Shown here one piece after another: positions 11,028 through 36,551 of a stretch of DNA of 64,000 bases. The notes below the pieces were generated by a model. It made no database searches, was not told the origin of the DNA, and worked only from the letters and a program-made list of their open reading frames with translations. Each line of letters starts with the position of its first letter. Within the stretch, counting starts at the first letter, position 1. The position numbers were made by a program, and so were the translations under genes. The DNA comes from Oculina patagonica. Lineage: Eukaryota. The DNA is taken from NCBI RefSeq assembly GCF_052425735.1, contig NC_135758.1:47926001-47990000 (forward strand), written 5' to 3'.

Positions 11028-14000
11028 TCACAAATTAAAGAAAGAATAGTAGTAAAGAGTTTCATCGCAAGCATCCCGAAAGAAATTCAGCTCATTAACC
11101 AGTCCTTCGTGGAAAATGAGAAGAGACTTTTCTTTATCCTCTGGAGTGAAGAAGTAGTCAACAAACTTCTCCAGCCGGCTTTTGTCGTCTGGGTCAGGCT
11201 TGTTGTCTTCAAGCCAGCCATAATAGGGGTTCTTCTTGTCAACTGAATCAATTAGCTCACCAGCAATCCAAGGCCAAAGCATGGTACATGGTAACATGGC
11301 TATACATAGGAACTTAGCATCTCGACGACTCAGAGCAGACTCATAGCCCACGTACATTTCTGCTGCAGGTCCCATTACCACGCTTTCAGTATTCTTGAGT
11401 CGCCAGGTTTTAACAAACTCCTGGTTGTAGTTCTTGTAGCTCTCAGACTGGACTCGGTACAGCAAAGAAAATTCAGGTTTTCCTTGTACTTGCGTCTGCT
11501 GAGCAGCATAGTCAAATGCTTCCACTGCATTGAAGCAGTAGGCAGCATCTTGTACCATGTAGCCGCCGTAGTCGTCTGGGTCGAGAGTTCCTGTAGCCAT
11601 CCCTTGGATAAACTTGGATTCTTTGGCAGCATTGCGGATCTTCACACTTGTTTCATTGTTGAACAAGTCTTGGCTGAAGGAGCTTCGTCCTTGCAAATTG
11701 TCTTCTTGCGGAGAGAAGTTGAAGTTAAATTTGATCTTCCTCGGACTCTTGAGGTTTCGTTTACTTTCTGAAAAGGAATACAAAGTCAATTAAAAAAATG
11801 CGTCGAAAATTGCCACAACTACAATTTTTCTTTAATTTATTTGGTGTATGTTTAATAACGTTTAGAGGATTGCCATCAAAACCACAACTAATATCTACAC
11901 ACAGTTTTAGCTACAATCTCAAAGGTCTGTTAGAATTTTCTTTTAGGCTAGATCATAAAACGAACAATCATTTATGTAAGGAAAGTGATGTGTTGTGATG
12001 TCTTTCTGTATGCTATGTATATTGTCTGATCTGTAGCCGAATAACCAGCTTAAGAAAGACTTTTGGTCTAAAATAATAGCCGAAAAAGCACAAAAAAGGA
12101 GGGCAATACCGCAGGAACAGGTACCAATTCCTAAAAATAGCAAGACCACAGTGAGCTGAAAAAAACCCCAGGGTCAAAATGGTGCACTCTGGAAAGACAT
12201 ATAAAAGTGGGACTGACGCCAAGACGCAATCAGTTGTGTGTAACGAAATACCCACGATTGATTCACTAATGAGGGGAATGGACAACCCGCTATTAATTCA
12301 CCAGATGTGGTCGCGTTGCAATGCTGCGCGTGACTCAATTGCTACGGAACATTTCCGAGCGCAATCACTGCGCCTTTCAATAATACGCGAACACTGCTAA
12401 ATCACTGGTTGCGTTTCTGTGACGTGACAACCGTGACCATAATCATGTTCTCGGGCAGTCACGTGGCGAGCAGAGCCTCGTGTAATGACTTTTTGTGGAG
12501 CGTAAATGCTAACTCGGCATTAAAGTTCAGTTGTTGTTTCAAGTCAGAGATGTGATGAATTCCCTTCACAACTCTCTAGCTTCGTAACAGGACGATATGA
12601 TGAGAATTCGTGGCCACACCGGTGAGTAAACAGTCTACCGAAATAAAAAAAAGGACGTTTGTTTTTCGTGGCCGCCATCTTGGATTTGGCGAGATACCTT
12701 AGAAGGCGCTGAAGGATTGTCTGCCGTTGCTCCGTTGATATTACCTCTAATGTATCTGCCGCCACCAAAACCGCTTGTCGTAGACGATAATCTGGCTAGT
12801 AATTGGAAACATTGGAAAAAAGTATGGCAAAGGTACGGAATTGCGACTGGAATCATAGTTACTAACTATACTGGAATGGGCATGTACTAAAACCCGAAAC
12901 AACGAAACGAAACCACCGAAACGAAACGACCGAAACGACCGAAACGACCGAAACGAAACCGCCGAAACAACCGAAACGGCCGAAACGAGCGAAACGAGAC
13001 GAAATCACCGAAACAAGCAAAACCCATTACAATTATTGAGAGCTAACCGTAAACAGGCTAACCGGAGTGCATAGTAGGCTAACCTAAGTGAAACGTAGGC
13101 TAACCGGAGTGTGTAGTAGGCTAACCGGAGTGTGTAGTAGGCTAACAGGAGTGTATAGTAGGCTAACCGGGGTTTATAGTAGGCTAATCAGAGTGTATAG
13201 TAGGCTAAACGGGGTGTATAGTACGGTAAGTGGCGAAAATCTTGAAGTTTTGCTTGTTTCGGTGATTTCGTTTCGTTTCGCTCGTTTCGGCCGTTTCGGT
13301 TGTTTCGGCGGTTTCGTTTCGCTCGTTTCGGTGGTTTCGGTCGTTTCGTTTCGGTGGTTTCGTTTCGTTGTTTCGGGTTTTAGTATATGCCGCTGGAATG
13401 TACCAGCAAGACGATCTTATTCGAGTGTCAACTTTGCTTTCAGTCATCGGCGAGGATGCCGTCAAAGCGTTTGATACGTTTGCTTGGGGTGAAGAGGAGC
13501 CAAAACAGTATTACGGATGTCTTAGCCAAATTGACGAATATTGCGAACCTCACACTCAAGTGATTTACGGACTCTTCCATTTTAATTATCGTAAACAGGA
13601 GCTAGGCGTAAGTGCGTACGTGACCGAGCTGCGTGTGATTGCGAAGAACTGTGCTCACGACGAAATCATACCCGACAACAATTTACGCAGTAGCTTGGTC
13701 CTTAGAGCCCGAGATGAGAAAGTACGCGAACGCCTTTAACGAGTAAACGACCTGACCTTGTCTAAAGCCATCGACATTTGCAAAGCGGCCGAACAGACCA
13801 GAAAGCAAGGTGATTGCCAGCGGAACAGAGGAGTCAGTTGGTGCAGTTAGAACAGAACAAAAAATGGCCTAAAGAATGAGCCACCTCAGAACACACGACG
13901 GGTACAGCTGTACGTGACCCACCCATCCAGCGACCAGATCGTAGATTCTGTGGATATCACTATGGAAATCGCCAGTGCCTTGCAAAAGGGCAAACTTGCC

Positions 14001-17000
14001 ACAAGTGTGGACAAAACAACCACTTTCAGTCAATGTGCCGATCATCCAACCCGATGGTTACACACTTAGAAGAAGTACCTGAAGAAGGTTTTCGCATAAG
14101 TAAAGTTTGAATTGGATCGCGTGCTTTAATTACTATGGAAGTCGGCATGCAAAGCAGTCAAAGATAGGTGACATTCCAACTGTGCGCAGGCGTGGCATGC
14201 AGCCTCCCGTCGCTGGACGATCATCTGCGTGCCACGGGTGATGTGGATTTGGCACAAGTCAAGCAGTGCTCACACAAGTTTATTAAAACTTACACAAATG
14301 AACGGTACAAGATAATAGGGACGACAGAGCTTCCTCCATGGCGCCATAGGAAAGAAGTGTGTTGCAGTTTAACACTACAGGAGATGACCTTGCCCCACTG
14401 TTATCATATACAGTAAAAACCCGCGTGTAAGAACCTAGGGATTTAAGAAGGACTTTAAATAAAAACCGCGCTTGCATTGGAAGAAAATTGAAAAATCAAA
14501 TTCCTTCATTATTTTGCTCATTAATAGCTTTTAGGTAGATAAGAAACCTGATGTATTTTGTTCCCCCCAGAAGTCTTCTAATTTCGAGAAAAAAACCAAA
14601 GTCAGTTTTCGTGATCGGAGCCTCAAAGTGACACAATTTTCAACCCGAAATTCGCTATCGTTAACTCTCGTCGCGTTCACAAACAAAGCCACATTGAAAA
14701 CTTTGGATGCTTTCTATCAACAGAGAAACTCTTTTCCATTCGCTAAAATATAATTTCAGGGCTTAAGCAAAACTCTTCGAACTGAAATAATTAAAAAGGT
14801 GGGGAATACTTTTCACGATACTAGAAAGTCGAATTAAACGGCAGTTTTCAACGGAATTATTTATTATGTGGTATAACTCCAAATTTCCTCAATTGTCGTT
14901 TAAACACACATGTAAATGTTTATCTAAGACATACCTGAGAATTTGCTTGGGTTGTTGAAGGCAACATATTTATCAATGCATCGTAGTCCCACAAAATGTT
15001 GTGATATCGATCAAAATAGCCTAACTTACAGCTAAACATTTCTTGGCTCCAAAATGCAACAAAGCAACTGTTAAGCGCGAAATTCCTTTTGCATCTTCAT
15101 CCTTAGCAATTGTCCTTTATCGTGGTTCTTTTCTCTTGACGAAAGTGTGTACAGAACGCCAGAACGCTCAATTTGCTTCCTCAAACTGCGTTGTCGGTGC
15201 TGGAGAATTGTTTTGCGTTATTTTAACTCCGTGACATTCTCGACCCCAGAGCTCTTACTGCGCAGACTCAATTACGTCACAATATCGTGTTTCATGTCAC
15301 GTGTATTATGTCACGTAAGTCACAAATCTAATCTTGTAGCAAAATGGCGAAGAGGTTTTGCGATCAAAATGGACCTTAATTGACCCAGGTTGGCTTTTTT
15401 ATCTCACTCTTTCGTTGAAAAGGGAATTTTGCAATGGAACATTCGGCAAGAAGAAGGAAAGACGAGCATTTGGGGTTAAAACATTCATTATCGTGGCGTT
15501 TGGCAATTAGAAGTATTTACACAGTTTACGGTCATGCTGTGAAAATTTGCCGAAGTTTGATGCCCTCTAAGTGAGAATCTTTCCAATAACCCGAGCCAAT
15601 TCTCAGGTATGTTTAATAAGAATATCTGTATGCATGTTTGAGCGAGAATTGAAAAAATTTAATGTTATACCACATGCTAAATACTGCCGTTGAAAATTAC
15701 TATTTCATTCAAATTTTTGTTATGGTAAAAAGCATTCCTCGTCAGTTCATTTTTTTCAGTTGGAAGAGTTGCGATAAAGCCCTGAAATTATATTCTAGCG
15801 AAAGAAAAAGAGTTTTTATGTAGATAGGTAGTGACAAAATTTCTCTGCGCGGTTTTGTAAGCGAACGCGAGGAGTGTTCATAATAGCTAATTTCGGGTTT
15901 AAAAGTTAGGAAATTTGTGACTTCGACCACCGAAATCGATTTTCTTTGTTTTCTCAAAATTAGAAGACCTCTAGGGGAAACAAACTACATCAGGTTTCTT
16001 ATCTACCTTAAAGCTAATAATGAGCAAAAAACGAAGACAAATCGATTATCCAATTTCTGCCAGGAAATCAAATTCTTGCTCGGCCGTTCGTAAAAGTCAC
16101 TCTTAAGAACCTTCTGGCAGAAATTTGCTTTTTTAATACCCCAAAACATAAGAACCTGTTTAGCCAAATAAATTCCAACAGGTTCTTATATGTAGAGTTT
16201 AACTACTTAATTTATATATTTTTTTACCAAAAGCCAGAAAGGTCATGTTACCGGGGTATATACAGTATGTTGTTGGACTTTTGGCAACATGGGTACATTA
16301 ATAAATATTTATAATGAAGAACAGACCAGATTTTATACTATTTTCTGATAATCAACAACAATGTCTACTCTGTAGAAATTAAGAACCTGGTTAAGAACCT
16401 ACTTAGCCTAAACTGTCAATAAGTACCCCATAATACAAGAACCTGTTTTGCCAAACTCTGGAAAAGTAGGTTCTTACACGCGGGTTTTTACTGTATCACA
16501 TGTATTGGACTGGCCTCGTCACAATTATTGACTGTGATAGCCCAGCAAACTCCAGTGGTCTCGAGGATACCCCCAGCGTAGCTGTAACAATAGGGATTGC
16601 CGACCTTCTAGAGGAATACAAATATGTCTTTGAAGGCTTGGGTAACCTCCCAGGCGAACACCACATCGTCACCGGTGACACAGTTCCACCTGTAGTACAT
16701 CCTTCCCGTCGTGTATCAGTCGATTTACGAAACCAGATCAAGGAGAAACTGGATGAGATGGTTGCATCTGTAACTGAACCAACCGAGTGGGTTTCCAGTA
16801 TGTCGGTCCTTGTCAAGCCCAACAATCTGCGCATATGTCTTGACCTGCGCGATTTGAACAGAGATCAATACCAAATGCCAACAGCGGAGGAAGTCGCGAC
16901 CCGCGTTTCACAAGCAAAAAAGTTCACTGTCGTAGATGCCTAGAATGGCTTTTGGCAGAAATGTCATGACAGTGAGTCTGGCTACAAGACCACTTTAAAC

Positions 17001-17971
17001 ACGCCGTTTGGGCGTTACAGATGGAAGAGGATGCCATTCGGCATCTCCTTAGCACCAGAAGTCTAGCATCGTACAATGCATGAGTTTGTCGAAGACATGG
17101 AAGGAGTGCAAGTGATTGCAGACGACTTGAAAGAAATGAGCGCGCTTTTCTCGAAAAATGCCGTTTGTTGAACTTGAAGTTGAATCGAGCGAAAGTGAAA
17201 TGGCACCAGCAAAGTGTAAAATTCATGGGCCATCTCCTCAGTTCTCAGGGGCTAATGCCTGACCCCGAGAATAATGCAGATGCCTGAACCTGAAGATGTC
17301 ACTGCATTGAAGCGATTCCTGGGGATGGTGACCTATCTTGCGAAATTTATGCCCCACCTATCGGAGATAACAGAGCCACTTAGACGTCTGGAAGACAAGA
17401 ATGTGGAGTTCCAGTGGTTAGAACAGCAATCTCTTGCCATGGGAACAACCAAGAAGTTTCTGACAGAGGCAACTGTCTTCCGCTATTATGACGTAACAAG
17501 CCCATCACTGTACAATGTGACGCAAGCCAGTCTGGCTTAGGAGCAGTACTCCTGCAAGATGGTCAGCCTGCCTGTTATGCTTCCCGTGCCCTCACGGACA
17601 CAGAGTCTCGATATGCGCAGATCGAGAAAGAGATGCTCGCCATCACTTGGGCATGTGGCAAGTTCGACCAATACCTTTATGGGAGATGGCACTGAACGTC
17701 TAGTCCAAGATATCCAGTCTCAGATTTACTATTCTATAGCCCTATTGTTTGGCACGACAGACAAGAGACCAACTAAACAATGTGGTGGGTAATAAATTCG
17801 GATTAGTTTAGAGTCAATTGGAGCCGCAGAAAGGATTCTTTGTCCCTTTTTTGAACACGTTGCCTTAGTAGGAGAGCAAAATACAGCTTATACACTCTTT
17901 TTTTTTATAAGAATCTAGTTTATAAGAATATCGAGGCTGAAATTTGCGATTTTTTAAGAATATCTTAAGAA

Positions 17972-18002
<31 letters not shown>

Positions 18003-18670
18003 AAATTTTGAGTTGAAAATTTGTAAATACAATACAATTAAATATATTTTTAGTTGAAACAAAATCAGGTGTTTTCATTTCCCTCTTAGCATCACTGTGA
18101 GGAATGCTTTGTTTAAAGCCAAACGGCCAAGTGTTATGTGACGCGACATCTTGATCTTGCTGGCTGCAACGAAAAGCGATGAAGCACGAGCACAATGTAA
18201 CATGATACAGAATGTTCATAAGAAATATTTTCAGCCTAAAATCAGCAGAAAAATAAGAATATCCAGCCTGGGTCGGAAAAACTGTATTCTTATAAAAAAA
18301 AAGAGTGTATCACATTTGCTACAACTTCTAGATATACTGCAAAATAGCACCAGTAAAATTTTAGTAAGGCAGTTGAAGTAAGCTTGTCTATCAGGTCTTC
18401 TCTATCAGGTGAAACAACAATTTTATTAGTGGCTCTACATGAAGTCCAATATTTCAGAAAAAAAGAGTGGTGAATGGGCCGACGCCCCGCTCCAAAATTA
18501 TCGGAGTAAGCTTCTAATTTGATTACGTCGTGCAGACTTCTGATATACACTGATTTCGTTCTTGTGTTACACTGATTTCAGTTGTTTGTCACGGCCCGGA
18601 CCAATCGTGACTTGCAAAAGAAATTTGCATATATGGATCGGAATAGGCACTTACCTTTAACACGACTCAT
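11028..18670 (-). CDS. tenA: TenA/THI-4/PQQC-family protein (thiaminase II / aminopyrimidine aminohydrolase-like), copy 1, ~251 aa
   Basis: Coding exons 18670-18655 (ATGAGTCGTGTTAAAG|gtaagt) and 11767-11028 (ttttcag|AA AGT), phase 1. Motifs SKFIQGMATGTL, YMVQDAAY, IAMLPC..LW, NPYYGW and NELNFF are collinear with TenA (HPFV.G...GTL, Y..QD..Y, AA.LPC..LY, Y..W, E..FW). Confidence 0.88.
12879..13391. mobile_element. Foldback-type non-autonomous DNA transposon (GG ends, ~9-bp TSD; MULE/FB-like) with modular TIRs and a central 21-bp tandem array
   Basis: ~140-bp TIRs ggcatgtactaaaacccgaaac(aacgaaacg...)n mirrored at 13250-13391. Eight copies of a 21-mer (aggctaaccggagtgtatagt consensus) at ~13055-13222. 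Flanks actggaatg / gctggaatg. Confidence 0.85.
14411..16493. mobile_element. Tc1/mariner-pogo-type non-autonomous element (TA TSD)
   Basis: ta|cagtaaaaacccgcgtgtaagaaccta ... taggttcttacacgcgggtttttactg|ta, a perfect 27-bp TIR. Removing it rejoins Gypsy pol (PLLSY|ITCIG). Confidence 0.9.
14447..16102. mobile_element. TTAA-flanked element with long (~500 bp) imperfect inverted arms (Kolobok-like), nested in the TA element
   Basis: ttaa|gaaggacttt ... aaagtcactc|ttaa. Internal arms include taggtagataagaaacctgatgta (~14532) versus tacatcaggtttcttatctacct (~15986). Confidence 0.7.
17893..18307. mobile_element. MITE (TA TSD)
   Basis: ta|cactctttttttttataagaat ... attcttataaaaaaaaagagtg|ta. Confidence 0.8.
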
Positions 18671-20202
18671 CGCAACAGTTATGTTTATACCACAGATGGA
18701 ATCAACTGAAAGAGAACAAATATCATTTAATTGGTAAAATTCATGCCTTTATGGAATCGCGATTTACACAATGCTCTTTACTTTACTGCGATGGGCCCTG
18801 TTCCGTACTGATGTACGTTCTAATGTATGTTCCTAAGTTGTGTCTCATTCAGTTTAATCACAGAAACATAAAAGCTTAAAGCTCAACTTTGCAGGTGTAA
18901 GTATGATTCGATACATACAGCATCTAAATGTTAAGAATGCCGCCAGTGCATCTTTTATACGACGATCATTAAGTACCATGGATATCGTGCAGTAAATTAA
19001 AGCTGCATAAACACTGCATAAATTAAATCTATCAGAATATAGTTCGTTTACTTACTTTGGATTGTTATCTGTCCGCTTTTCTCTGAAATGTACCTGCTTT
19101 TCAGGCTGATATAATTTTGTGAGGCAGCAAGGATGGAAACTTCAGGTCGCGAGCGCTGTCTGAAGTGAATATTCCGTGTTGCTAAGAACAATAGAAGTCG
19201 AACCTGACTGACGTCACTCCATTTGATAAATGACCGTCGGTCACGCAACAGGGCGTTTATAATCACATGTATAATCGTCTGGATTTTGTCTTTTTGTGTT
19301 CTTCAGAAATATTTAGCACAGCCTATTTTAGCACAGACTCGAGCTGACAACGTTGTTGTCAAGTTTAAAGGTAGATAACACTCATATTAAAAGTATACGT
19401 CCCCGGAATTGGATAACAAGGCTGAGAAGACCCCGGCCACAAACTTTGGGCTCTTTCGAAGTAGAAACAGATTACTCATTTAAAGAGTCATATCCAAGTG
19501 AATACTATTTAATATAAAAAATGCTTGCATATTAGTTAAATACACCTAAAAGGTAACATAAAAAAAGAACATGCATATCAGTTTTATTTTGGACACGAAA
19601 TATGATCTCTTATTACAACAATTGCGTTATTACTGCTTTAATAAGTAGTTGGCTCACAGCAAAACAAAAAAAATTACTCCGAAACTGACACAGGCTAATT
19701 AACTTTCCTTAATGTTCACTAGCAGTTAACATATTATATATCGTTTAAAAGAAGAAACAGTTGGAGCGTGCATATATGTCACCCATAACGCAAAGCGTTA
19801 ATACTCAGAACCAATCAAAATTCAATTTCCTCTTTGTAAGATTCATGTAACAACTGTGACATAACGCAAACTTTCCTTGCCTTCCGCCACGAATAGCGAG
19901 CACTATTTTATTCAGTACTTCTTACCCAAAGCCGATTCCACTTAATTTTGAACTATAGAAAATCATGAGCTAGATAACACGATTACACTGAAATGCAGGA
20001 CATTTAAATTGCATTACCTTAACCTTAAACAATGGCGCAAAAAAAACGTCCTTGCCTTGTTTGGGTTCAAAACCGGCATAACAAAAAATCCGCTTAACAG
20101 CTTAAAAATTACCAGCAAGATCTGGATCAATGCACAATAATTCTCAGACTCCAAAGACTGATCATGGCTGATCTCACATTGAAACAAAAAATATTTATGC
20201 AG

Positions 20203-22060
20203 TTACACATTGAAATACGAGTAGTAATACAGAGTTTCATCGCACGCATCCCGAAAGAAATTCAGCTCATTAACCAATCCTTCGTGGAAAATAAGAAGGG
20301 ACTTCTCTTTATCCTCTGGAGTGAAGAAGTAGTCAACAAACTTCTCTAGCCGGCTATTGTCGTTTGGGTCAGGCTTGTTGTCTTCAAACCAGCCATAATA
20401 CGGGTTCTTCTTGTCAACTGAATCAATGAGCTCACCAGCAATCCAAGGCCAAAGCATGGTACACGGTAACATGGCTATACATAGGAACTTGGCGTCTTGA
20501 CGGCTCAAGGCAGACTCATAGCCCACGTACATTCCGGCTGCAGGCCCCATTACCACGCTGTCAGTACTCTTTAGTCGCCAGGATTTTACAAACTCCTGGT
20601 TGTAGTTCTTGTAGCTCTCAGAATGCACCCTGTACAGCAAAGAAAATTCAGGTTTTCCTTGTAGTTGCATCTGTTGAGCAGCATAGTCAAATGCGTCCAC
20701 TGCATTGAAGCAGTAGGCAGCATCTTGCACCATGTAGCCTCCATAGTCGTCTGGGTCGAGAGTTCCTGTAGCCATCCCTTGGATAAACTTGGATTGTTTG
20801 GCAGCATTGCGAATCCTCACACTTGTCTCATTGTTGAACAATGTATGGCTGAATGTACCTTCTTTCTTCAAACGTTCTTCAGGAAGGAAGTTGAAGTTAA
20901 ATCTGATCTTCCTTGGGGTTTTGGGGTATCGTTTCACAACTGAAAATCAAAAAGTCTGTCATGTCCATGGCATATCCTTATTGAAGACTTAGATAAGGGG
21001 CCTGAAGGGGTAAAATGGAAACTGGTATTTGGACAAATGTTCACTGAGTTAATGGGATTTAGGTCACTGATACTGGCAATCACAAACAAATAACCAATAG
21101 AACTTGGACTGGACTTTGAAATAACGGAAAAACAAGAGGCCTGGAAATGGGATTTGAGCAAAATTTGGGCTGGGAAACGGGGATCTTATTTCCCCCTTCA
21201 GGACCCTCTTTTATTGGTTGATACACCATGTAGATAATTTAGATTTCCCGCGCGTCCTTGGATGCGATCACGTGCTCGAAAATTGATCTAAAAATATCGC
21301 TTATTTTTTATATTTGGGAAACTGAAGCACTAGGTAATTGCCATGTCATGTTTGGACATGGAGAAAAAAGGTTGAACAACCGCAAAACCGCATTGAATAA
21401 TCATGTCCAAAGTGGGTTTTGTATGCAGAGCACGTACGTTCAGTTGATTTAGCAAACGTCATCAAATAAACAAACTGAAACTATAAAAGAGGCATGGAGC
21501 CAAGAAATTAGTTCGTGACATAACTGGTCTTTGTATGAGCTGAACGTTTTTGCATTTTCTTTTCTCCTTTTTGCTTTTTTTAAACAATTCTTTTTTTTTT
21601 TTTTCTTTTTTGTTTTTTAAAAAAAAAATCCGTCAGTAACGATCCTTATGCTAGTGCTATTGCTATAGTCCATCATCTTATAATTAAATTCACTGGGCAT
21701 TTATAAAAATTGGTACAGCATTTGACTTTTACACTTCTTCATGTCCCTATCTAAAGTATTTAAATACCCCGGGAAAAATTTTACTCTGTTTAGAGTTCAG
21801 ATGAAAAAAGCTTCACGTGATTCAGCCATGCAAGCTGTTGGTGGTAAACAACTCAGAAAAGTACGACAACGGTGTTTTATTCAGAATAATGTTGTCAGAA
21901 TTCGACAATGAAAAAACAAAACAAATGGGTCAAGTCTGCGTTTGGACTCGTAAACTATTGCCTATCATGAACTTCATGATCGGTTGTTCGACACTGTTCG
22001 CTGTGGACGAAATTTTATTGTTTGATATAGGTACTAACCTTGTAGCCCCGCACGATTCAT
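20203..22060 (-). CDS. tenA: TenA-family protein, copy 2, ~252 aa
   Basis: Coding exons 22060-22039 (ATGAATCGTGCGGGGCTACAAG|gttagt) and 20939-20203 (ttttcag|TT GTG AAA). Same QD, LPC and NELNFF motifs. Confidence 0.88.
20995..21210. mobile_element. Small MITE in TenA copy 2 intron
   Basis: aagggggcctgaagggg ... cccccttcaggaccctctt inverted ends. Confidence 0.6.
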
Positions 22061-23170
22061 CACAGCAGTTTTGCAATATCAGGGAAGAAACAAACTGAAA
22101 ATGGAAGTATTAATAGCATTTAAGACGTATAAATTCATGAGTTTGTTTTTATTCATGATGACAAAATTTGTTAACTTATGTTACTCCGATTCACATCTCA
22201 AGTTATGTTTTATATACCTGTACAGCTAAGGCTGGGTTAGGAAGTGTAAATAAGAAACATTTTACTCGCCAATACCGTGCAGTGAAGCACGCCTGTGAAA
22301 AATGCTAAAATGTAGTTCCAAATTACCTTGTAATCCTCTGAGAAGTTTTCGTTGCACGAGCGCTAACAATTTGCGTCTCTTCACGCTGATATTTTTTGAC
22401 GACACAGCAGAAAGCTGAAATCAATATTCTTTTGTTAGTTCACAAAACTGCACGGGCAAGCCATAACATAACAACTGGCGTCACATCACTTGATTTAGCA
22501 TCCACCAGTCACGCAATAGCTGAAGCAGTTTTAGGTTAACTTTGAGTGAGAACTGCAAAATGGCTGTACTTTCCACGACTTTAAATGCTATTCCTCAGTC
22601 TCTCTTTCGCTGTAAGTAAACATCTAATACCGTTTTATTTTCTGCTTTTAATCCTTTAATTTATAGGCGGTACTTGTATTGGCAGCAAATCAATTTATAG
22701 CCAAATGTTGTTTTTTCAAGTGGTTTTTGGAAACAGTTCTTAAGACAGGCAGGATCAAAGAAAACAAACGATGAAATGCAGGAAGTATTTTTTGTTGGGG
22801 CTGGATCTTGTAAGAACCGGAATCTACAGGTTCGACTAAGAGATGTATAGTTCAATGCAACATATTTTATATGCACTTAATAATTAGCACCTATTCCAAC
22901 AAGTGATCTCTTTGGGTTTTTATATGGAATCTAAAAAATGCCATTGTTGGTACCTAGTGAAAGCTTGCGCTCAAAATGATGTCGATGAAGAAAAGAAGAG
23001 ATATAAATAAATGAGTTTGAAGTAATTAGGGGAAAGTATATACTAAGTGAAGAATTAAAATTCACATTGTTAGCAAGTGATCTAGAAAGTAATATATACT
23101 TCTGAATGAACAGATGTCACTGTACCATACACCATCTCAAAGAGTAGTGCGTTTCAGAGAGATAAATATA

Positions 23171-24264
23171 TTACATGTTGAAAAACGAGTAGTAATACAG
23201 AGTTTCATCGCAAGCATCACGAAAGAAATTCAGCTCATTAACCAATCCTTCGTGGAAAATGAGAAGGGACTTCTCTTTATCCTCTGGAGTGAAGAAGTAG
23301 TCAACAAACTTCTCCAGCCGGCTTTTGTCGTCTGGGTCAGGCTTGTTGTCTTCAAACCAGCCATAATACGGGTTCTTCTTGTCGACTGAATCAATGAACT
23401 CACCAGCAATCCAAGGCCAAAGCAAGGTACATGGTAACATGGCTATGGATAGATTTCTAGGATCTTGACGGCTCAAGGCTGCCTCATAGCTCACGTACAT
23501 TTGGGCTGCAGGTCCCATTACCACGCTGTCAGTATTCTTCAGTCGCCAAGACTTGACAAATTCCTGGTTGTAGTTCTTGTAACTCTCACATTGGACTCTG
23601 TAAAGCAAAGAAAATTCAGGTTTTCCTTGCAGTTGCATCTGCTGAGCAGCATTATCAAATGCACCAACTGCATTGAAGCAGTAGGCAGCATCTTGCACCA
23701 TGTAACCGCCATAGTTGTCTGGGTCCAGCGTTCCTTCAGCCATCCCTTGGATGAACTTGGATTCTTTGGCAGCATTGCGAATCTTCACGCTTGTTTGATT
23801 TTCGAACAAGTCTTGGCTGAAGGAACCTTCTCTCTGTGAGATTTCTTGCGGAAGAAAATTGAAGTTAAAGCGGATTTTCCTCGCCGTTTTTGGGAATCGC
23901 TTGAGAACTGAAATAGGAAAAAAAACGTGTAAGATACATATAATTCTTGCCAGCCAAGAGAAGATACCAAGAATAAGAGAATTGTGTAAGGATGGTCAAC
24001 GACTGAGGAAAACTGATAGAGAAGTATAACATTGTTCTTTGCCTCGTAGCGAGACTGTGCTAGCGGGGTGTGTGGCACATGTGTATTCGAAAAACTGCAG
24101 AAAATGAATGACTAAATGCCTATATTTGCTTTCATTTACATGCACTGCGAGTGTTCGTGACCAATATGTTTACTTGCGTTATGTCTGCGTATCAAACTTG
24201 TCACAAAAAGGACTTCATTTGCATTTGAAACTTTGAATATTGACCGACCTTGCACACGACTCAT
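23171..24264 (-). CDS. tenA: TenA-family protein, copy 3, ~250 aa
   Basis: Coding exons 24264-24249 (ATGAGTCGTGTGCAAG|gtcggt) and 23907-23171 (ctatttcag|TT CTC AAG). Same motifs. Confidence 0.88.
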
Positions 24265-24822
24265 CGCACCAGTTTTGTGATATCACAGAAATATGGCAGA
24301 TGGTCAACTGAAAAAGAATGATTAAGTTTTAGTGTATATATATATATTTTTTATTTTGGGGCGAGGATGCTGTTCGCGTTAAACCGTTTGTTATGATATT
24401 GATCAATATGTATTTAAGTATATAATAATCAAAACGGAAAATGGCGGCGCTGGACCGAAAAATGAATCATAACAGAAGTTAACTGCATTTGTCTTCTCTC
24501 GTGGAAATTAAATGTAGTCGTCTCTCCCAGGTACACATAAGTACACAGATCACATTCTATACATGGCAATAAGACGAAGCACTGTTTCCAAGAGCGTTTT
24601 CTAGCGAGACTGATCATGAGGATCCAATTATTCCCCCAAGATGAATTTTGGCGCTGTTGAGCAAAGCATTAACTACAAAACTTGATCATCTTACCTGTTT
24701 ACCTTTTGCGCCAGTGTGTTTGTCGCCCGCAACCTGTAAAATATCCTTGGTCAGCTAGATAGATTTGTGCAAGAATACAGAGATGTATGCTTTCAGATGT
24801 ATGCTTGTGTCTAGTGCAAGAA

Positions 24823-26105: not shown

Positions 26106-29100
26106 TGTTATAATATGTGCATGTATATGCATTCCCTTGAGACGCTACTTGGCTATTTAGTATGCTGTTATCTTAGTTCGTTGTCAGTTGCAACGTAGAT
26201 TTGAAAGTAAACACTTGTTCGTTTACCCGTGTTGATCCTTGTGTTATTACATGGTAGCAGCGTGTGTGTAACTCTATTCATCGTTGACAACGTTTTAAAC
26301 CGTCTACGATGCCAGGAGGTGAAGCAGAATCCGCTTCAAGCGCCGTTGAAACTGCCGCGGCTCAGCCGCAAACCTCACAAGCGCCGATGTTTCATCAGGT
26401 TTCACCACCTCAACCTCTTTGTTTAAAACACAGTGGAGAAATCGCCGAAAACTGGAAACTTTGGAAGGAAAAGTACAACAACTATTTCATTATTTCTAGG
26501 TTGGATCGAGAGAACCCAGAATACCAGCTAGCGATGTTCAAACACACGATTGGCAATGATGCTTTGAAGCTTATCAAAACGTTCACTTACGCTGAAACCG
26601 AGAACCGGAATGATTGGCGCGTGGTGATGGGAAAAGTAGAGAAGCACTGTATTGGAGAGGTCAATGAGATCTATGAAAGGTACTGCTTTAACAAGCGGGA
26701 CAAGATCCCAACCGAGTCGGTGGATAGTTTTGTCTCCGAGTTGAAGACGTTGGCCAAGACGTGTAATTTTTGTGATTGTTTGCGGGACAGTCTGATCCGC
26801 GATCGAATTGTGCTTGGAATCAAAAACGAGCAAACTACAAAGAAGCTGCTGAGAGTAAGAGATCTTACCCTGAATCGGTGTATTGACATATGTCGCAGCG
26901 AAGAAGTTACGGAGTTGCAGATGAAATCTCTTTCGGAACCAGTAGACAACATTCATCAGTTCAAGTCAAAGAATAAGAAGCCTTCAGTTCCGACGCCGGA
27001 TGGACGGTCGGGAAAGAAAATTTCGTGCAAGTTTTGTGGCTACGATCATGCTCCAGAAAGAAAGAAGTGTCCTGCCTGGGGCAAGATGTGCAAGCGTTGC
27101 AAGAAGAAGAATCATTTTGCTAAAGCGTGCAAGGATCCCGCGGTTTACGCTATTGATAGCGATGAAGACTTGGAAGAGATAAGTGTTGTGAGGGTTCAAG
27201 CTATGAAGGATAAAGTCGTGTTTGCTGAAATGCTTGTCCAGCAGAAACCCGTTAAATTTCAAGTTGACTGTGGAGCTAGTGCTAACATTTTGCCATACAA
27301 ACATGTTGGAGGTGTGGATCTCGCTCCTTGTTCCCAATCCCTTGTTATGTGGAATGGCACCAGGGTCAAGCCGATGGGGACGTGTGCTCTGCTAGTTGTG
27401 AATCCTCGGAACAATACAAAGTACAAAGTGAGGTTCTTGGTCGTTAAGGAAAATCTAACTCCACTTCTGGGCTTAAATGCTACTGAGAAAATGGGTTTAC
27501 TGACAGTGCACAAGGAAAACTTTGTTAGTGTTGTGGAGAATTTGGAAGATGATCTGGTAGTCAAATATGCAGATGTGTTTGACAATGGTCTTGGAAAGCT
27601 TCCTGGCAAGGTTCATCTACAAGTAGACACAGCTTGTCAACCAGTAATTCTGCCTGCCAGAAAAGTGCCTGTCTTCGTCCGGGAGAAGTTCAAGGTGGAG
27701 CTTCAAAGGTTGCAGGACCTGAAGGTCATCGCCCCTGTCGATGAGCCAACTGAATGGGTCAGCCAGTTTGTCGTCGCTGTCAAGAAGTCCGGTGATTTAC
27801 GGGTCTGCATCGATCGTAAGCCGCTGAATGCAGCCCTCAAGAGAGAAAGATACCAGATTCCCGTGATCGACGACATGCTGCCCGATTTGGCAGGTGCTCG
27901 TGTGTTCACCAAAGTTGATCTCGCGTCCGCTTTTTGGCAATTGGAGCTTGACGATGAGTCCAGCCGGTTAACAACTTTTGCCACTCCTCGTGGGAGGTAC
28001 CGCTGGCTTCGTTTGCCGTTTGGTCTGTGTGTATCGAGCGAGATATTTCAGAAACATTTACACCAAGAATTGCTGGGCCTGCCAGGTGTGAAGTGCATTG
28101 CTGATGATGTACTTATTTATGGAACGGATGATGCTGATCATGACAGCAACCTGCAGAGTTTCATGAAGAGGTGTCAGGTGAAGGGAATAAAACTCAACCG
28201 CGCGAAGTTGGATTACAAGTGCAAAGAAGTTCCCTTCCATGGGCATCTTTTGACAGCAGAAGGCCTGAAGCCAGATCCTCAGAAAGTTAAGGCGATTACT
28301 GAAATGCCACGGCCTGAGAAGCCAGACGATGTGTCGCGTCTGAATGGTATGGCCAATTACCTCAGCCGTTTCCTACCAAATTTGTCTGCATGACGTGATG
28401 AAGCCGCTGCGTGACCTAACACATAAGGATGTAGAATGGTGCTGGTCCGACACGCAAGAACGGGCTTGGTGTGAAGTCAAGAAACTCATTGCATCTGCCC
28501 CTGTGCTATCCTACTGCAAGCCAGACGAGCCGCTAGAGGTGCAATGTGACAGCAGTTTGGCTGGTCTTGGCGCAGCCCTAATGCAAGGCGGTCATCCCAT
28601 TGCCTATGCGAGCAGAGCGTTAACGGAAACAGAGTCTCGTTACGCACAAATTGAGAAGGAAATGCTTGCGATTGTGTACGCTGTGGAGAAGTTTAACGAC
28701 TACACCTTTGGTAGAAAAACTGTGGTTTTCAGTGATCACAAACCATTGGAATCGATTCTTAAGAAGCCTTTGCATCGTGCCCCAAAACGTTTGCAAGGCA
28801 TGATCATTCACCTTCAGAAGTACGACTTGGAGGTGAAGTATGAGAAGGGCAACAAGATGTTCTTGGCCGACACCCTTTCAAGAGCATTCCTTCCAGCCGG
28901 TGAGCATGACGAGCAAGAGTTTGAAACCATCAATATGATCAAGTATTTCCCGGTGTCGGAAGAAAGGCTCCTGCAGATTCAGCGAGACACTGAAGCGGAC
29001 GAATCTCTTCAAGTATTGAAGGGTGTTATTCAGAAAGGCTGGCCAGAGCAAAAGAGTGAGGTGCCCAGAGTTATCTCCCCTTACTTCAACATGCGTGATG

Positions 29101-30668
29101 AAATGTCTATCCAAGATGGCCTCATCTTTAGGGGAGAACGAGTTGTGGTTCCGCGAGCTTCTAGAAGCGAGTTATTGAAGCGAATTCACAGCTCACATCT
29201 TGGGGTCAATGGCTGTTTAAACAGAGCGCGCGAGTGTTTGTATTGGCCTGGGATGACGGCTGATATAAAGAACTATGTGTCAACTTGCGAGGCATGTCGG
29301 GAGTATGAGCGCGGTCAACCCAAGGAAACAATGATGTCCCCTGAGACACCAAACCGTCCCTGGCAACGAGTTGCAGCCGATTTATTTGAGCTCGAAGGGA
29401 AAGTTTACTTAGTAACCTCGGATTACTACAGCGATTTCTTTGAGTTGGATCATTTGAGGTCTCCATCGTCGATCTCTGTTATCAGGAAGTTAAAGGCTCA
29501 TTTTGCGCGGCACGGCATTCCTGAGCAGCTGGTGAATGATAACGGCTCAAAATTTACGTCGCGTGATTTTCTCAGGTTCGCGAAGGAATGGGACTTTGAA
29601 CATCTCACGAGCAGCCCATACCACAGTCAGGGTAGCGGTAAAGCAGAGAGTGCAGTAAAAGAGGCTAAGAAGATTCTTAGAAAGTGTAAAGTGGGTGGAA
29701 CGGATGCTTTTCTTGCTTTGCTTCATCATCGCAACACCTCACCTGCCGGTGTCCAAGTGAGTCCTACACAGCGCCTTTTCAACAGAAGGACTAGGAGTCT
29801 GCTACCGATGACGGCCAGTTTGTTTGCACCACAGGCTGTCCCAGATAATGAGCAATGCAAGGCCAAGCTCGAACAGCGCAAGCAGCGACAGGCCAGGTAT
29901 TACAACATAGGGGCTGTCGATCTGGAGCCTTTGAAAAGAGGAGAAACCGTGAGGCTGAGACCTTTCCACCTGGGCAAACGGGAGTGGTCAAAAGGAGTGG
30001 TCCGAAATCGGCTGGGCGAGAGATCGTATGAGGTAGAGACGCCGCACAGCACTGTTCGTCGCGACCGTGTTCACTTACGGAAGATAAACGAGCCATCACC
30101 GCCACTTTCAGATGATCTGCCTGTTGAGTTACCTGCTTCCCCGGAGCCACAGTCGGATAGGTCGCAGAATGCCGTTCCCGTAGAAGCTGCTCCGCCTGCG
30201 TCAAGTTCAGGCAATGCGTCTCCGATTCAGCCGGAAGGTTCCCCGACTGTTGCAGAGTCTCCCAAGCCAGTGTGCTAAGGCGATCCGAGCGCCAACGACG
30301 GCCACCAAGGCACTTAGATGACTATGTGCTTACAAAGCCATAAACTGTTTTTTGCCAAAGACTGTTCTAGAGATTTCTAACGCGTGAACTTTAGGCTCGA
30401 GTACTTATCTCTAGAATGCGTGCTAAATTCATATATTGTATTTGTCAGCTCGTACGTTTGTTAGTTGTTTAGAGCAAAGCGTGTTTTGTTTTTCTTTCTT
30501 TTTTCATTTATAAAAGGGAGGGTGTTATAATATGTGCATGTATATGCATTCCCTTGAGACGCTACTTAGCTATTTAGTATGCTGTTATCTTAGTTCGTTG
30601 TCAGTTGCAACGTAGATTTGAAAGTAAACACTTGTTCGTTTACCCGTGTTGATCCTTGTGTTATTACA
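26106..30668 (+). mobile_element. Full-length, young Ty3/Gypsy LTR retrotransposon
   Basis: 146-bp LTRs at 26106-26251 and 30523-30668 (TG...CA, one mismatch seen). 5-bp TSD GGAAT. PBS TGGTAGCAG (iMet-like) at 26252. PPT aaaagggaggg at 30512-30522. Confidence 0.97.
26309..30343 (+). pseudogene. Gypsy gag-pol polyprotein (Gag-CCHC, PR, RT, RNase H, integrase) broken by two small insertions
   Basis: CKRCKKKNHFAKAC knuckle, VDCGA protease, RLPFGL and CIADD RT, CDSS/IEKE RNase H, H-H-C-C and D,D,E integrase. A 4-bp insertion (gcat, 28388-28391) and a 2-bp insertion near 30272 break one ancestral ORF ending ...RRPPRHLDDYVLTKP*. Confidence 0.92.
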
Positions 30669-32153: not shown

Positions 32154-35100
32154 TGTGGTGTATTTAATACAGAAAACAGTGTGTAAACTCCGAGTTACAA
32201 CACACACATGGCAAGAACTCAACTAACTCGATCGTACACGGCCTTCTTGTCACGTGACGACTCTACTAGTTCCAGGACTCCACATTCCTCCCCCCCCCCC
32301 AAGTTCTTAAACAAGCAAGAAAACAAACGTCAACGAGAAAAAAAAAATTAACGCCTCTGCCATAAAACTTAAAACTGTTCACGGGGGAGGGAATGAGTCC
32401 ATTAGTAAAACCGCTGCGGGGGGTTTCTATTCCTCGCTGGGTATCGCCTGACAGGGGTAGTTGGCCCCGAGTCCCGAACCATTGTTGCACTGGGTGGTTC
32501 TCTGTCTCCATGGGAAACCTCGGGGTCATTTACATCAGGTACGATTATCTCTGGATCCACACCTTCCTGCTGCAATGAGCTAGTAATTGGTAATGTGACA
32601 CCAGGGTTGAAACTTTCTGTGGGTCGAGCAACTAGTTGATCGTGGTGTCTTCGAACCACAGTTCCATCTTCCAACTCAATTCTCGCAGACAAAGGACCAG
32701 TTTCCTGGATGATAGTTCCTGGAATCCACTTGGGGCCTCTGGAGTAGTTTCGAACATTCACTGAATCGCCGACTTCCACTTGACGCATTCGGCTATGCTG
32801 ATCATGCTGTATCTTCTGTCTTGACTGTGCTGCATGTACCCTTGGCGCTACATCTGGTCGCAGCAGATCGAGATGTGACCTCAGACTTCGTCCCCAGCGT
32901 AACTGAGCAGGAGACTCACCCGTGGTGCTTTGGGGGGTAATACGATAACTTAATAGGAACCGAGCTAACTTGGTCTCGACAGTACCATCACCTTGCTTCT
33001 TCATCCCTTGCTTAAACGTCTGCACCGCTCGTTCTACGAGGCCATTTGATGATGGGTGATAAGGAGCAGAGGTAATGTGCTTGATGCCATTTTTCTGTAG
33101 AAATGACTTGAACTCGCTGCTAACAAAATTGGACCCATTGTCTGACACTACAATCTCTGGTAGGCCGTGTGAAGTGAAGGTTGTCCTCAGCTTTTCAATG
33201 GTTGCGCTGGAAGTGGCAGAATTCACACAATGGATATCCATCCATTTAGAATGCGCATCAATAATTAGGAGAAACATCTTGCCTATAAAAGGACCGGCAT
33301 AATCTACATGTACTCGAGACCAAGGGCGGCCTGGCCATTCCCAAGGGTGCAACGGTGAACTGGGTGGCTTCTTTTGGTGGCTTTGGCAGGTAACACAGCT
33401 TTTCACCTTTTCCTCCAAACGTGAGTCCATTTTCGGCCACCACACATAGCTCCTAGCTAGGCTTTTCATTCTAACAATACCGGGGTGGGACTCATGTAGT
33501 ATGTTCAACACTTCCTCTCTCCCCTGTGGGGGTATCACGACCCGGGATCCCCAAAGTAGGCAGCCAGCATGTACACTCAATTTCTCTCTTCTAGCAAAAT
33601 AAGGCTTCAGGGCTTCTTCTTCGACTGCCATGGGCCATCCGTGAAGGACGAACTGCAGAACTTGAGAAAGTACTGGATCACGGGCTGTCCACAACTTCAC
33701 TTAAGCGGCATTCACTGGGCTGGGGTTGATGGTCTCTAGAAGGTGTACAATGTCCCCTGGGATGGGCGTGGTCTCTGGAGCCACTGGAAGGGGTAGACGA
33801 CTGAGGGCGTCTGCGTTTCCATTCTATTTACCAGGGCGATAAATAAGCTCATACTCATACGCAAGCAAAGTCAATGCCCATCGCTGCATCCTACTTGAGG
33901 CCATTAGAGGTGTGGCTCGTTCAGGGTTAAGCAGCCCCAAAAGTGGTTTGTGATCTGTGTAGACCTTGAAATGACGTCCAAAAAGAAATTGATGGAACTT
34001 CTTCAGGGCAAAAACTACAGCTAGTGCCTCTTTATCTAGGTGGCCATAGTTCCTCTCTGCTGTGGAGAGTGTTCGTGAGGCATATGCAACTGGTTTCTCT
34101 GAGCCATCTTTCATAACATGGGCCAGCACTGCCCCAATACCATAGGGTGAAGCATCACAAGATACCACCAACTCTTTCTCAGGATCATAATGCACGAGTA
34201 CATCTGATGATTGAAGTCGATTCTTGGCCTTATCAAACGCCTCTTGTTGCTCTGTACCCCATTTCCGACAAATATCTTTCCTCAGAAGCTCGTGCAGTGG
34301 CTCCAGGGTGGACGATAGGTCGGGCATGAACTTGCCAAAGAAGTTAAGCATCCCTAGAAAGGACTTCAGCTCAGAGGGATTGGTTGGGGTTGGGACCTCC
34401 TTGATGGCCTTCACCTTTGCTTCAACTGGATGGAACCCTTCTGCGTCAATGCGGTGCCCCAGGCACTCCAAAACGGGCTTCATAAATTGGCACTTTTCAG
34501 CTTTGAGCCGCAAGCCGGCATCAGAAAGGCGTCCCAAAACTTTCTCGATGTTGTCTAGGTGCTCTTCCATGCTGGGACCTGTGATGAGGATATTATCTAG
34601 CAAGACTCCTGTCGAAGGTATTCCTTGCAGCAAACCTTCCATGGTTCTCTGGAAGATGCCGGGCGCTGAAGAGACCCCATATGGAAGGCGGTTATATCTA
34701 AAAAGGCCTTTATGGGTGTTAATTGTCAAAAACTCCCTTGAGTTCTCATCCACAAGCATCTGCTCATAAGCATGGCTCAAGTCTAACTCAGTAAACGTTT
34801 GACCCCCAGCCAACTTTGTGTATAGATCATCGAGCTTGGGGATAGGGTAGCCATTCAATTTCGAGACCTTATTGACGGTAAGCTTGTAATCTCCACAGAC
34901 TCTTACCGTGCCATCAGTTTTCATAACTGGGACAATGGGTGTGGCCCACTCGGAATATTGAACGGGTTCAATGGTTCCTGCCTTCTCAAGTCTTTCCAGG
35001 TCTTGCTAAATTTTCTCCCTGAGAGTATATGGCACTGGTCTGGCTTTATGGAAAATGGGGGTGGCTGTGGGGTCCACATGGATCTTGGCCTTTGTCCCCT

Positions 35101-36551
35101 GTAGGGTCCCCAGACCCTCCCCAAATAGCTGTGCATGTTTCTGCAAAATCTCTCCAAGTCGCTTGTCATGCGAAGTAAGTTGCTTAATCCTTGGCCAATT
35201 TAGCTTAATTTCTTCCAGCCAATTCCTCCCCAACAGAGCTGGGCCTTCTCCACTTACAACTAACAATGGCAAGGAGTATTCGCCCCCTTCATAATGTACA
35301 TCAACTGTACACACCCCTTCGGGCTTGACCTCTTCCCCAGTATATGTACGAAGGACAATTCCTGATTTCTCCAGTGGCGTGCCCCGTTTTGTGAGACAAG
35401 GTGTTTGTAGGTGCCTTCACTTATCACTGACAATGAAGCCCCTGTGTCAACTTCCATTTCTAGTGCTTGCCCACCAACACTCAGCTGTACTTTGTATGGC
35501 AAAGGTCGTTTACCGCCAAGGGTAAACAAAGAATATGCACCCACACCCTGTTCTCTCCCCATTGCCTCCTCTCCCCCCTCTAGGAGATGGGTATCCTGTG
35601 GGGTGTCTGACTTCTTATTAGTAGTAGCAGGTGGTACTTCCTTTCTTTTTGTTCTGGCACACTCGAGATAGGTGACCCAACTTTCCACAAGCATAACATT
35701 TCGCATCCTTAAAATGACAGCTTTTGGGGTAGTGATTACCGCCACAGCGATAACAATTAACTTCGCCACCCTTTTCCACTTTAAAATCGACTTTGTTGAG
35801 CGAAGTATCCCCTTCCTGAGGGTCCCCCTTTTGTATCTCCGAGGCATCCTTATCCGCGGCCTCAATGGCGAGAGCCAGATCGAGCGCTCGCTTCAGGGTT
35901 AATTTCGGTTCGGCTAGTAAACGACGCTGTATTCTGATGTCGTGAACACCACACACAAGCCGATCACGTAGCATTTCATCTAATGTTGCCCCAAATTCAC
36001 AGTGTTCGGTCAGGTGCCTCAACTCAGCTAAAAACATGGCAATTGTCTCACCTGGTTGTTGAGTGCGAGTGTTAAACTTGAATCGTTGTACAATAGCGGA
36101 AGGCTTTGGCATGACATGTTCCTGGGCGAGTTTCGCTAAATCCTCATAGGTTTTGGTCTTCGGGTCTTCCGGAGCGACCAGACTTCGTATAAGCTTGTAG
36201 GTTTTGGCTCCAACGCTAACCAGGAAAATGGATCTTTTTTTGTCCGGATCGGTTATCTCGTTTGCTTCAAAAAAGTGGTTAACACGCTCAGTGTAATGGC
36301 GCCAATCTTCCGTTTCGTTGTATTCGTCTAATTTCCCAAATGTAGGCATTTTCCGTGTAGACTTCGCTTCACTCTAGTCTACCTGGTCGTGGTATTCGAT
36401 CACGTTCCTCGTCGCCAAAAATGTGGTGTATTTAATACAGAAAACAGTGTGTAAACTCCGAGTTACAACACACACATGCAAGAACTCAACTAACTCGATC
36501 GTAAACGGCCTTCTTGTCACGTGACGACTCTACTAGTCCCAGGACTCCACA
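32154..36551 (-). mobile_element. Full-length but disrupted Ty3/Gypsy LTR retrotransposon
   Basis: LTRs at 36422-36551 (5') and 32154-32284 (3'), three differences seen. Flanks GGAAC / GGAAT. PBS TGGCGACGAGG (tRNA-Ser-like). G-rich PPT just before the 3' LTR. Confidence 0.96.
32402..36349 (-). pseudogene. Gypsy gag-pol fragments (Gag with two CCHC-type knuckles, PR VDTGA, RT, RNase H, integrase)
   Basis: Collinear ORF pieces 36349-35618, 35865-35260, 35314-35006, 34924-33824 and 33700-32402, separated by frameshifts and stops. Confidence 0.92.

Follow-up and report, generated by a model that had tools for sequence, protein, structure and literature searches.

We examined a 64,000-nucleotide stretch of the genome of the stony coral Oculina patagonica (NCBI RefSeq assembly GCF_052425735.1, contig NC_135758.1, positions 47,926,001 to 47,990,000 of the forward strand). 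The whole stretch is called the window below, and positions are counted from its first letter. It contains three TenA-like genes arranged head to tail on the minus strand, numbered here from the lowest position upward. We think it likely that they form a tandem array of three functional paralogs of the BtTenA-like subclass, which has been described as a new sublineage of TenA_C, the cysteine-type TenA enzymes (Stentz 2023, PMC10277260).

Gene models, transcripts and selection

The raw minus-strand open reading frames (ORFs) of the trio lie at 11028-11789, 20203-20937 and 23171-23809. The original prediction was that these belong to three intact spliced paralogs, each with an ATG exon of 16-22 nt joined in phase 1 to an exon of about 740 nt, and the splice sites and reading frames bear this out. 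In every gene, a micro-exon with 16-22 nt of coding sequence is joined in phase 1 to the ~740-nt exon at GT/AG sites, and the joined frames are open. The micro-exon start codons are at 18670 (gene 1), 22060 (gene 2) and 24264 (gene 3). The donors GTAAGT, GTTAGT and GTCGGT lie directly below 18655, 22039 and 24249, and acceptors with a polypyrimidine tract and CAG (...TTTTCAG) lie directly above 11767, 20939 and 23907. The three proteins are 251, 252 and 250 aa long, with pairwise identities of 84.5-85%.

In gene 1, the coding part of the micro-exon occupies 18655-18670 (16 nt, encoding MSRVK plus 1 nt) and was placed by sequence, frame check and homology; the exon itself probably starts after an acceptor, ...CTTTCAG, near 18706. 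A 6.9-kb phase-1 intron (11768-18654), with the GTAAGT donor and the TTTTCAG acceptor, separates it from the main coding exon, which spans 11028-11767 including the stop and carries Asp79 (11547-11549), Cys166 (11286-11288) and Glu231 (11091-11093). In gene 2, a non-coding first exon at 22327-22356 (donor side 22327; the 5' limit is approximate) precedes a 56-nt second exon at 22039-22094, of which the 22 nt at 22039-22060 are coding (MNRAGLQ plus 1 nt). Its main exon, again including the stop, is at 20203-20939, with Asp80 at 20722-20724, Cys167 at 20461-20463 and Glu232 at 20266-20268, and its 3' untranslated region (UTR) extends to about 19495. The coding part of the gene 3 micro-exon is at 24249-24264 (16 nt, MSRVQ plus 1 nt), and the main exon with the stop is at 23171-23907, with Asp78 at 23690-23692, Cys165 at 23429-23431 and Glu230 at 23234-23236; a 3'UTR contig extends to about 22374. 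Paralogy is visible in the three start exons and in the ~40 nt that precede them, and there is an acceptor-like CAG before each. Each gene begins with a non-coding exon, demonstrated in gene 2, continues with the tiny ATG exon and ends in a single large exon.

For RNA evidence, we mapped contigs from four public sequencing runs to window positions 18401-24400. Contigs from runs X1, X2 and X15 cover the exons and UTRs and hardly any intron, and spliced contigs are present among them; run X16 covers the introns as well and behaves as DNA. Two of the three junctions that the original prediction proposed to check in RNA, 22039/20939 and 24249/23907, were recovered as exact contig joints: 20939->22039 of gene 2 in spliced contigs of X1 and X15, and 23907->24249 of gene 3 in those of X1, X2 and X15. 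Both have CT..AC ends, equivalent to GT..AG when read on the minus strand. X1 and X15 contigs also contain the joint 22094->22327, an extra intron in the 5'UTR of gene 2, which therefore has at least three exons.

The large exon of gene 1 is present in many small RNA-like runs of the same studies. Its micro-exon junction is a prediction from homology: the transcript-derived coral orthologs P0005, P0015 and P0023 begin with MSRIRE followed by RSRRNLKSPR, resembling the gene 1 model. On another scleractinian contig (L010), two such genes lie head to tail 8.5 kb apart, and the same 16-nt ATG micro-exon with a phase-1 acceptor occurs there.

The spliced product of gene 3 agrees in all 250 residues with an annotated protein that has the same splice (P0002, hypothetical protein ACROYT_G004140 [Oculina patagonica]). 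Genes 1 and 2 had no 100% match in the protein collection, and the public annotation may miss or mis-model both. We also observed that the first exon of gene 2 (donor 22327) lies only ~20-50 nt from the end of the gene 3 3'UTR contig (22374-23215). This closeness (22327-22374) could mean read-through or a very tight promoter, which the contigs cannot separate.

Pairwise synonymous divergence (dS) among the three genes is 0.35-0.52, and the ratio of nonsynonymous to synonymous divergence (dN/dS) is 0.16-0.21 overall and 0.10-0.15 in the enzyme core. The three tandem copies are old duplicates under purifying selection. In a fine tree of scleractinian sequences, the basal forks were unresolved, and the duplications could not be ordered relative to speciation.

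Family, fold and active site

All three proteins matched Pfam family PF03070 (TENA_THI-4), as the original prediction expected, at 27.6, 28.3 and 31.6 bits (E-values 3e-6 to 2e-7), all above the cut-off of 22. By phmmer, the closest solved relative was BT3146 of Bacteroides thetaiotaomicron (2a2m; E = 6e-29), and Bacillus subtilis TenA scored 1e-3. An AlphaFold2 model built from 71 homologs had a mean predicted local distance difference test score (pLDDT) of 92 and a predicted template modeling score (pTM) of 0.88, and it adopts the all-helical, heme-oxygenase-like TenA fold. Foldseek placed BT3146 first, with template modeling (TM) scores of 0.77-0.82 and a root-mean-square deviation of 1.9 Å, followed by yeast THI20 and by bacterial and archaeal TenA proteins. 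The comparison with TenA structures that had been suggested as a check also came out as foreseen, since B. subtilis TenA was among the matches (TM 0.63-0.72). The top 36 PDB entries were all TenA-family proteins, with heme oxygenases after them, and every match to the coral model at E 0.001 or better belonged to one of these two groups. No homology to the thiaminase I of Paenibacillus or Naegleria appeared among the sequence matches or among structure matches at E 0.001 or better. A cluster search of AlphaFold DB gave generic TenA-like matches only, and a Cnidaria-rich TENA cluster in ESM Atlas was confirmatory only.

A family profile aligned with B. subtilis TenA (1tyh, 1to9, 1yaf) at E ~1e-16. 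Asp44, Tyr47, Tyr112, Cys135, Glu205 and Phe208 of the B. subtilis enzyme are kept in the profile; the positions of Tyr139 and Tyr163 hold Trp and Asn, respectively. Among the 71 family members, the Glu is invariant, and the Asp, Pro-Cys, Leu-Trp, Tyr and Trp positions, including L162, W163 and W183, are conserved in at least 90%. The catalytic Asp/Cys/Glu set (Asp44, Cys135 and Glu205 in B. subtilis), which marks TenA_C proteins and which the first reading of the sequence had already recognized, is present in all three coral proteins. That reading had also noted that two aromatic residues of the pocket differ. These substitutions are real, but they are not specific to the coral: BT3146 and the zebrafish thiaminase I have them too, as does the whole BtTenA-like subclass, so they are a subclass signature and not a coral trait. 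The coral proteins carry the full signature, LPCxxLWxW(I/L)A together with Asn at the Tyr163 position. They are nearer to BT3146 than to canonical TenA, and the cnidarian clade to which they belong (support 100/100) lies among subclass members.

BtTenA (BT_3146, PDB 2a2m/2a2o) is the nearest known protein both by the phmmer search above and by fold (TM about 0.8), and it shares with the coral proteins the LPCxxLWPWIA motif, the Asn at the Tyr163 position and the N-terminal arm described below. It differs in being a bacterial protein packed into extracellular vesicles, whereas the coral proteins come from a spliced nuclear tandem trio and have about 29% identity to it. B. subtilis TenA (PDB 1yaf, 1yak, 2qcx) shares the fold, the six aligned residues and the predicted self-association, but identity is about 18% and the two tyrosines are replaced.

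Self-association like that of other TenA proteins was predicted when four copies of the chain were modeled together. The interaction prediction score from aligned errors (ipSAE) was 0.43, compared with 0.00 for the best control, partner pLDDT was at least 82, and at least 82% of contacts agreed between runs. Of 30 proteins whose solved structures are pairs of one chain, 21 reached the mark used for self-association; of 23 with single-chain structures, none did. Solved TenA tetramers exist, and the predictor may have passed by remembering them.

That corals have this family was already known from published work, and the locus is a further member of a described family. Stentz 2023 (PMC10277260) lists aquatic bacteria, red algae, cnidarians ("corals and sea anemones"), echinoderms, mollusks, lancelets and freshwater fish, includes a Cnidaria clade in its tree, and reports that thiamin was degraded by recombinant BtTenA. 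Richter 2023 (PMC9839694) showed that a recombinant zebrafish TenA-like protein, NP_001314821.1, has thiaminase I activity, and found homologs in "diverse invertebrates"; Acropora, Pocillopora, Orbicella, Exaiptasia and soft corals are in its supplementary BLAST table. We found no paper in the literature assaying a cnidarian member. To this, the locus contributes a gene structure that has been verified and includes a very small start exon overlooked by gene callers, transcripts that directly support genes 2 and 3, evidence that purifying selection has long acted on the three tandem copies, and a contrast with the secreted fish enzymes.

The suggested link to the zebrafish enzyme held up. Zebrafish P0332 matched coral gene 2 over the whole core by BLASTP (23% identity, E = 1e-13), and both contain LPCxxLWxW. 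Zebrafish teni.1 (NP_001314821.1) belongs to the same subclass, has the Asp/Cys/Glu set, is a head-to-tail tandem duplicate and has three exons, as does coral gene 2, although its intron positions are different. The fish proteins have a cleaved signal peptide and no [ST]PR arm; the coral proteins show the reverse, with the arm present and the signal peptide absent.

Distribution and origin

When 1.84 billion cluster representatives were searched exhaustively and without a profile, only 307 clusters matched at E 0.001 or better. Named members include bacteria (Stigmatella and an Acidobacteriota bacterium), chordates (Branchiostoma and many teleosts), mollusks (Mya and Mytilus), echinoderms (Strongylocentrotus and Amphiura), the sponge Corticium, and, outside the animals, the fern Adiantum, the foraminifer Bolivina and the protist Gefionella. 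Three further members lie in typical bacterial gene neighborhoods, one of them near BT3146 (phmmer E = 2e-105). No confirmed relative came out of two scans of bacterial and archaeal genome contigs, one with the coral protein as query and one with Stigmatella P0118, and a word-based search from amphioxus gave few matches.

In a phylogenetic tree, all cnidarian sequences, including all five Oculina copies, formed a single clade (100/100). The animal groups as a whole did not form one clade in the free tree. Forcing all animals into one clade cost 13.5 log-likelihood (lnL) units and was not rejected (approximately unbiased [AU] test, p 0.118). The backbone was unresolved.

The original prediction also took the placement of the enzyme core on one exon as a hint of old horizontal acquisition. 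The Oculina core is indeed intron-less, but this is weak evidence in a family that extends from sponge to teleosts and for which a single animal clade is not rejected. A transfer would mean that the anthozoan clade descends from a bacterial gene gained by an early cnidarian, separately from other animals. Such an origin would agree with the patchy eukaryotic distribution, with the intron-less core, with the free tree, and with the similar scores of the closest bacterial and animal sequences outside the cnidarians (Stigmatella, 4e-29; amphioxus, 4e-25), and Stentz 2023 (PMC10277260) argues for transfer within the BtTenA-like family. However, the cnidarian clade is neither nested in nor sister to any bacterial clade, and six of the seven bacteria form a clade of their own (99/96). 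Members are found in sponge, echinoderms, bivalves, amphioxus and teleosts, and the cost of a single animal clade is tolerable by the AU test.

Intron positions also speak against a separate gain. Amphioxus and zebrafish have in common a phase-0 intron after the "LK" of W-x-LK (L019, L021), and amphioxus and sea urchin have in common another phase-0 intron before (N)D-x-N-(I/V)-Y (L019, L020). Amphioxus starts with a 20-nt ATG micro-exon whose end falls in the alignment column where the coral micro-exon also ends, although its phase is 2 and that of the coral 1. The Nematostella ortholog has an intron inside the core. Given the core introns in Nematostella and the deuterostomes, an intron-less core is not a family trait in animals. 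The Corticium gene model looks truncated at the C-terminus and was left out of these arguments. Old vertical descent with many losses fits at least as well as separate transfers, and the data decide for neither; a separate bacterial gift to an early cnidarian strikes us as possible but somewhat unlikely.

Ferns, shellfish and fish are the groups classically known for thiaminase I activity. Subclass members occur in the fern Adiantum (P0194), in bivalves (P0171/P0179/P0219) and in fish (P0291-P0346), which suggests that one enzyme family may underlie "eukaryotic thiaminase I". Classical thiaminase I of Paenibacillus thiaminolyticus and Naegleria gruberi may share base-exchange cleavage of thiamine with this family but is an unrelated protein, and Richter 2023 (PMC9839694) likewise reports no sequence similarity to it.

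Putative role and genomic surroundings

Catalytic activity, substrate, cellular location and biological role are matters that we infer. TenA chemistry is most likely for the coral proteins by analogy with B. subtilis TenA. The Cys (165-167 in the three proteins) would attack the 4-amino-2-methylpyrimidine ring at C6, in thiamine or in one of its breakdown products, with the Asp and Glu positioning and protonating the ring. The substituent of the C5 methylene (thiazole or amine) would then be released, and water or another nucleophile would finish the reaction, either by hydrolysis (thiaminase II type) or by base exchange (thiaminase I type, as measured in the zebrafish enzyme). In fish, the base exchange is with pyridine or nicotinic acid. 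Sequence cannot tell thiaminase I, thiaminase II and a degraded-pyrimidine substrate apart. The roles raised in the original prediction, which are antinutritive defense, pyrimidine salvage and control of thiamine supply to symbionts or microbes, are likewise hypotheses.

Several points weigh against reading the locus as three functional BtTenA-like enzymes. Activity has been reported for zebrafish teni.1 and BtTenA and for no cnidarian member, and sequence identity to both of these is low, at the 23% and about 29% given above. BtTenA was assayed in a crude cell-free extract, and the assay did not distinguish between type I and type II chemistry (PMC10277260). Since the fish enzymes are secreted precursors and the coral proteins are not, location and role may differ. 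The gene 1 junction, 18655/11767, is not among the RNA joints; contig coverage is absent there, and the runs have no depth over 18601-18800. Finally, there are TenA-family proteins without an enzymatic role, such as the LysR2 transcription activator (PMC12817078).

The location of the proteins can be approached from their N-termini. With a 9-residue hydropathy window, the maximum in the three coral proteins was 0.44 or less, and no signal peptide or hydrophobic N-terminal segment was seen; values in fish, amphioxus, bivalve and octocoral relatives were 2.5-3.2 (2.5-2.6 in zebrafish and alewife). The secreted-precursor trait of the fish enzymes belongs to the fish branch, and bacterial members are without it too. 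The lack of a signal peptide makes it most likely that the coral proteins stay intracellular.

In its place, the coral proteins have a basic N-terminal arm with an [ST]PR motif ~43-45 residues upstream of the core, encoded on the minus strand at 11700-11767, 20880-20939 and 23860-23907; in gene 3, TAR replaces TPR. The motif is common to bacterial, sponge, urchin, bivalve, amphioxus and coral members (family-wide, P0096-P0238). It was found in 42 of 120 proteins; 1000 shuffles of the N-termini gave 11.2 +/- 3.1 and never more than 23. Its recurrence across the family argues that the arm was inherited and is not a newly evolved targeting peptide. The arm is so far undescribed, and it is absent from the text of both 2023 papers (PMC10277260, PMC9839694). 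It was modeled at pLDDT 53-72 and lies outside the confident interface residues of the four-copy prediction (58-74, 119-131 and 177-180), which is no evidence against its being a subunit contact.

An intracellular enzyme could also serve salvage. The three proteins would then be aminopyrimidine aminohydrolases (thiaminase II) that turn degraded thiamine pyrimidines into 4-amino-5-hydroxymethyl-2-methylpyrimidine (HMP), from which the coral or its algal or bacterial partners would re-synthesize thiamine. The complete TenA_C catalytic set and the N-termini, which suggest an intracellular location like that of bacterial TenA, are in keeping with this, as is a spliced ThiM-like hydroxyethylthiazole kinase gene elsewhere in the genome. 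That gene has at least three exons on the minus strand at C13:30410378-30412166 (L016:6349-7684; L017:1050-1166), a few kb from a BAF-like gene, and its exons matched the Pfam HK domain at about 96-97 bits each when the genome was searched, and at about 89-90 bits when the two ORFs were scanned alone. A thiamine-salvage kinase is unusual in an animal genome. The HK domain appears in a domain-distribution table comparing robust and complex corals (PMC6214176).

However, an exon-level search of the genome detected no ThiE (PF02581) and no ThiD (PF08543) domain; the same search found the positive control, thiamine pyrophosphokinase (TPK, PF04263), at C7:32383120-32383371. With both domains missing from the search, the host seems unable to use HMP itself or to rebuild thiamine from HMP and thiazole. 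B. subtilis TenA works within a complete HMP salvage pathway, and the coral genome appears to be without one. In addition, the two assayed members of the subclass were tested for thiamine degradation only. On balance, we judge salvage to be an unlikely main function.

It is very improbable that the three proteins are regulators or binding proteins that have merely retained the fold. Some family members act in transcription (PMC12817078), and in one Oculina paralog, located on a different chromosome, the catalytic Cys is replaced by His, but the Asp, Cys, Glu and pocket aromatics are kept in all three tandem copies under strong purifying selection. The His-bearing paralog (C6:36443613-36444260; L005:1453-2076, minus strand) is 42% identical, reads LPH for LPC, belongs to the same cnidarian clade and may be a non-catalytic copy or one with altered chemistry. 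A second distant paralog (C1:42453666-42454397; L004:1441-2286, plus strand) is 43% identical and keeps the Cys; it is on the trio's own chromosome, 5.5 Mb away, and has orthologs in other cnidarians (P0089, P0102). A single-ORF PF03070 protein without the Cys motif (C5:33586218-33586823; L006:1489-2214, minus strand; 53.8 bits) represents a different, more canonical TenA/PqqC-like branch that is unrelated to the trio.

If the genes do encode functional BtTenA-like enzymes, a bolder proposal can be made: that stony corals possess an intracellular, non-secreted eukaryotic thiaminase I in three tandem copies that controls vitamin B1 in the holobiont, either by rationing thiamine to B1-dependent symbionts and microbes or by making the tissue antinutritive to predators, and that the [ST]PR arm is functional. 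We hold this to be speculative and doubtful in its entirety. Prey animals that contain thiaminases make their consumers thiamine-deficient, and vitamin B1 is among the metabolites traded in marine symbioses. Active intracellular thiaminases in corals would therefore have a bearing on coral-symbiont nutrition and on reef food webs.

The trio lies among animal genes and transposable elements, as had been noted from the sequence. Long terminal repeat (LTR) retroelement pol ORFs are located at 26309-30278 and 32402-34924, a reverse transcriptase fragment at 110-730 on the plus strand, and a single-exon rhodopsin-family G-protein-coupled receptor (GPCR; 7tm_1, E = 4e-32) at 38245-39399 on the minus strand. 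The GC content of the trio, 0.36-0.46, matches its surroundings. Bacterial contamination or dead retro-copies, which the intron-less main coding exon of each gene might bring to mind, can be rejected in view of the GT/AG introns in spliced contigs, the intact frames with dN/dS well below 1, the matching GC content, and the animal GPCR and LTR flanks on a 48-Mb contig.

The LTR-like gag-pol regions beside the cluster, at 26309-30278 (plus strand) and 32402-36349 (minus strand), include reverse transcriptase, RNase H, integrase and zinc-knuckle gag sequences. Inside the gene 1 intron are unclassified ORFs at 13088-13739 and 16496-17226. A Pfam scan of the intron ORFs 13368-13739 and 16500-16943 gave no match, and for this reason we do not term them transposons. 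Two further minus-strand ORFs, at 44560-45771 and 51477-52691, encode 403 and 404 aa; they have no Pfam match and look like duplicated genes.

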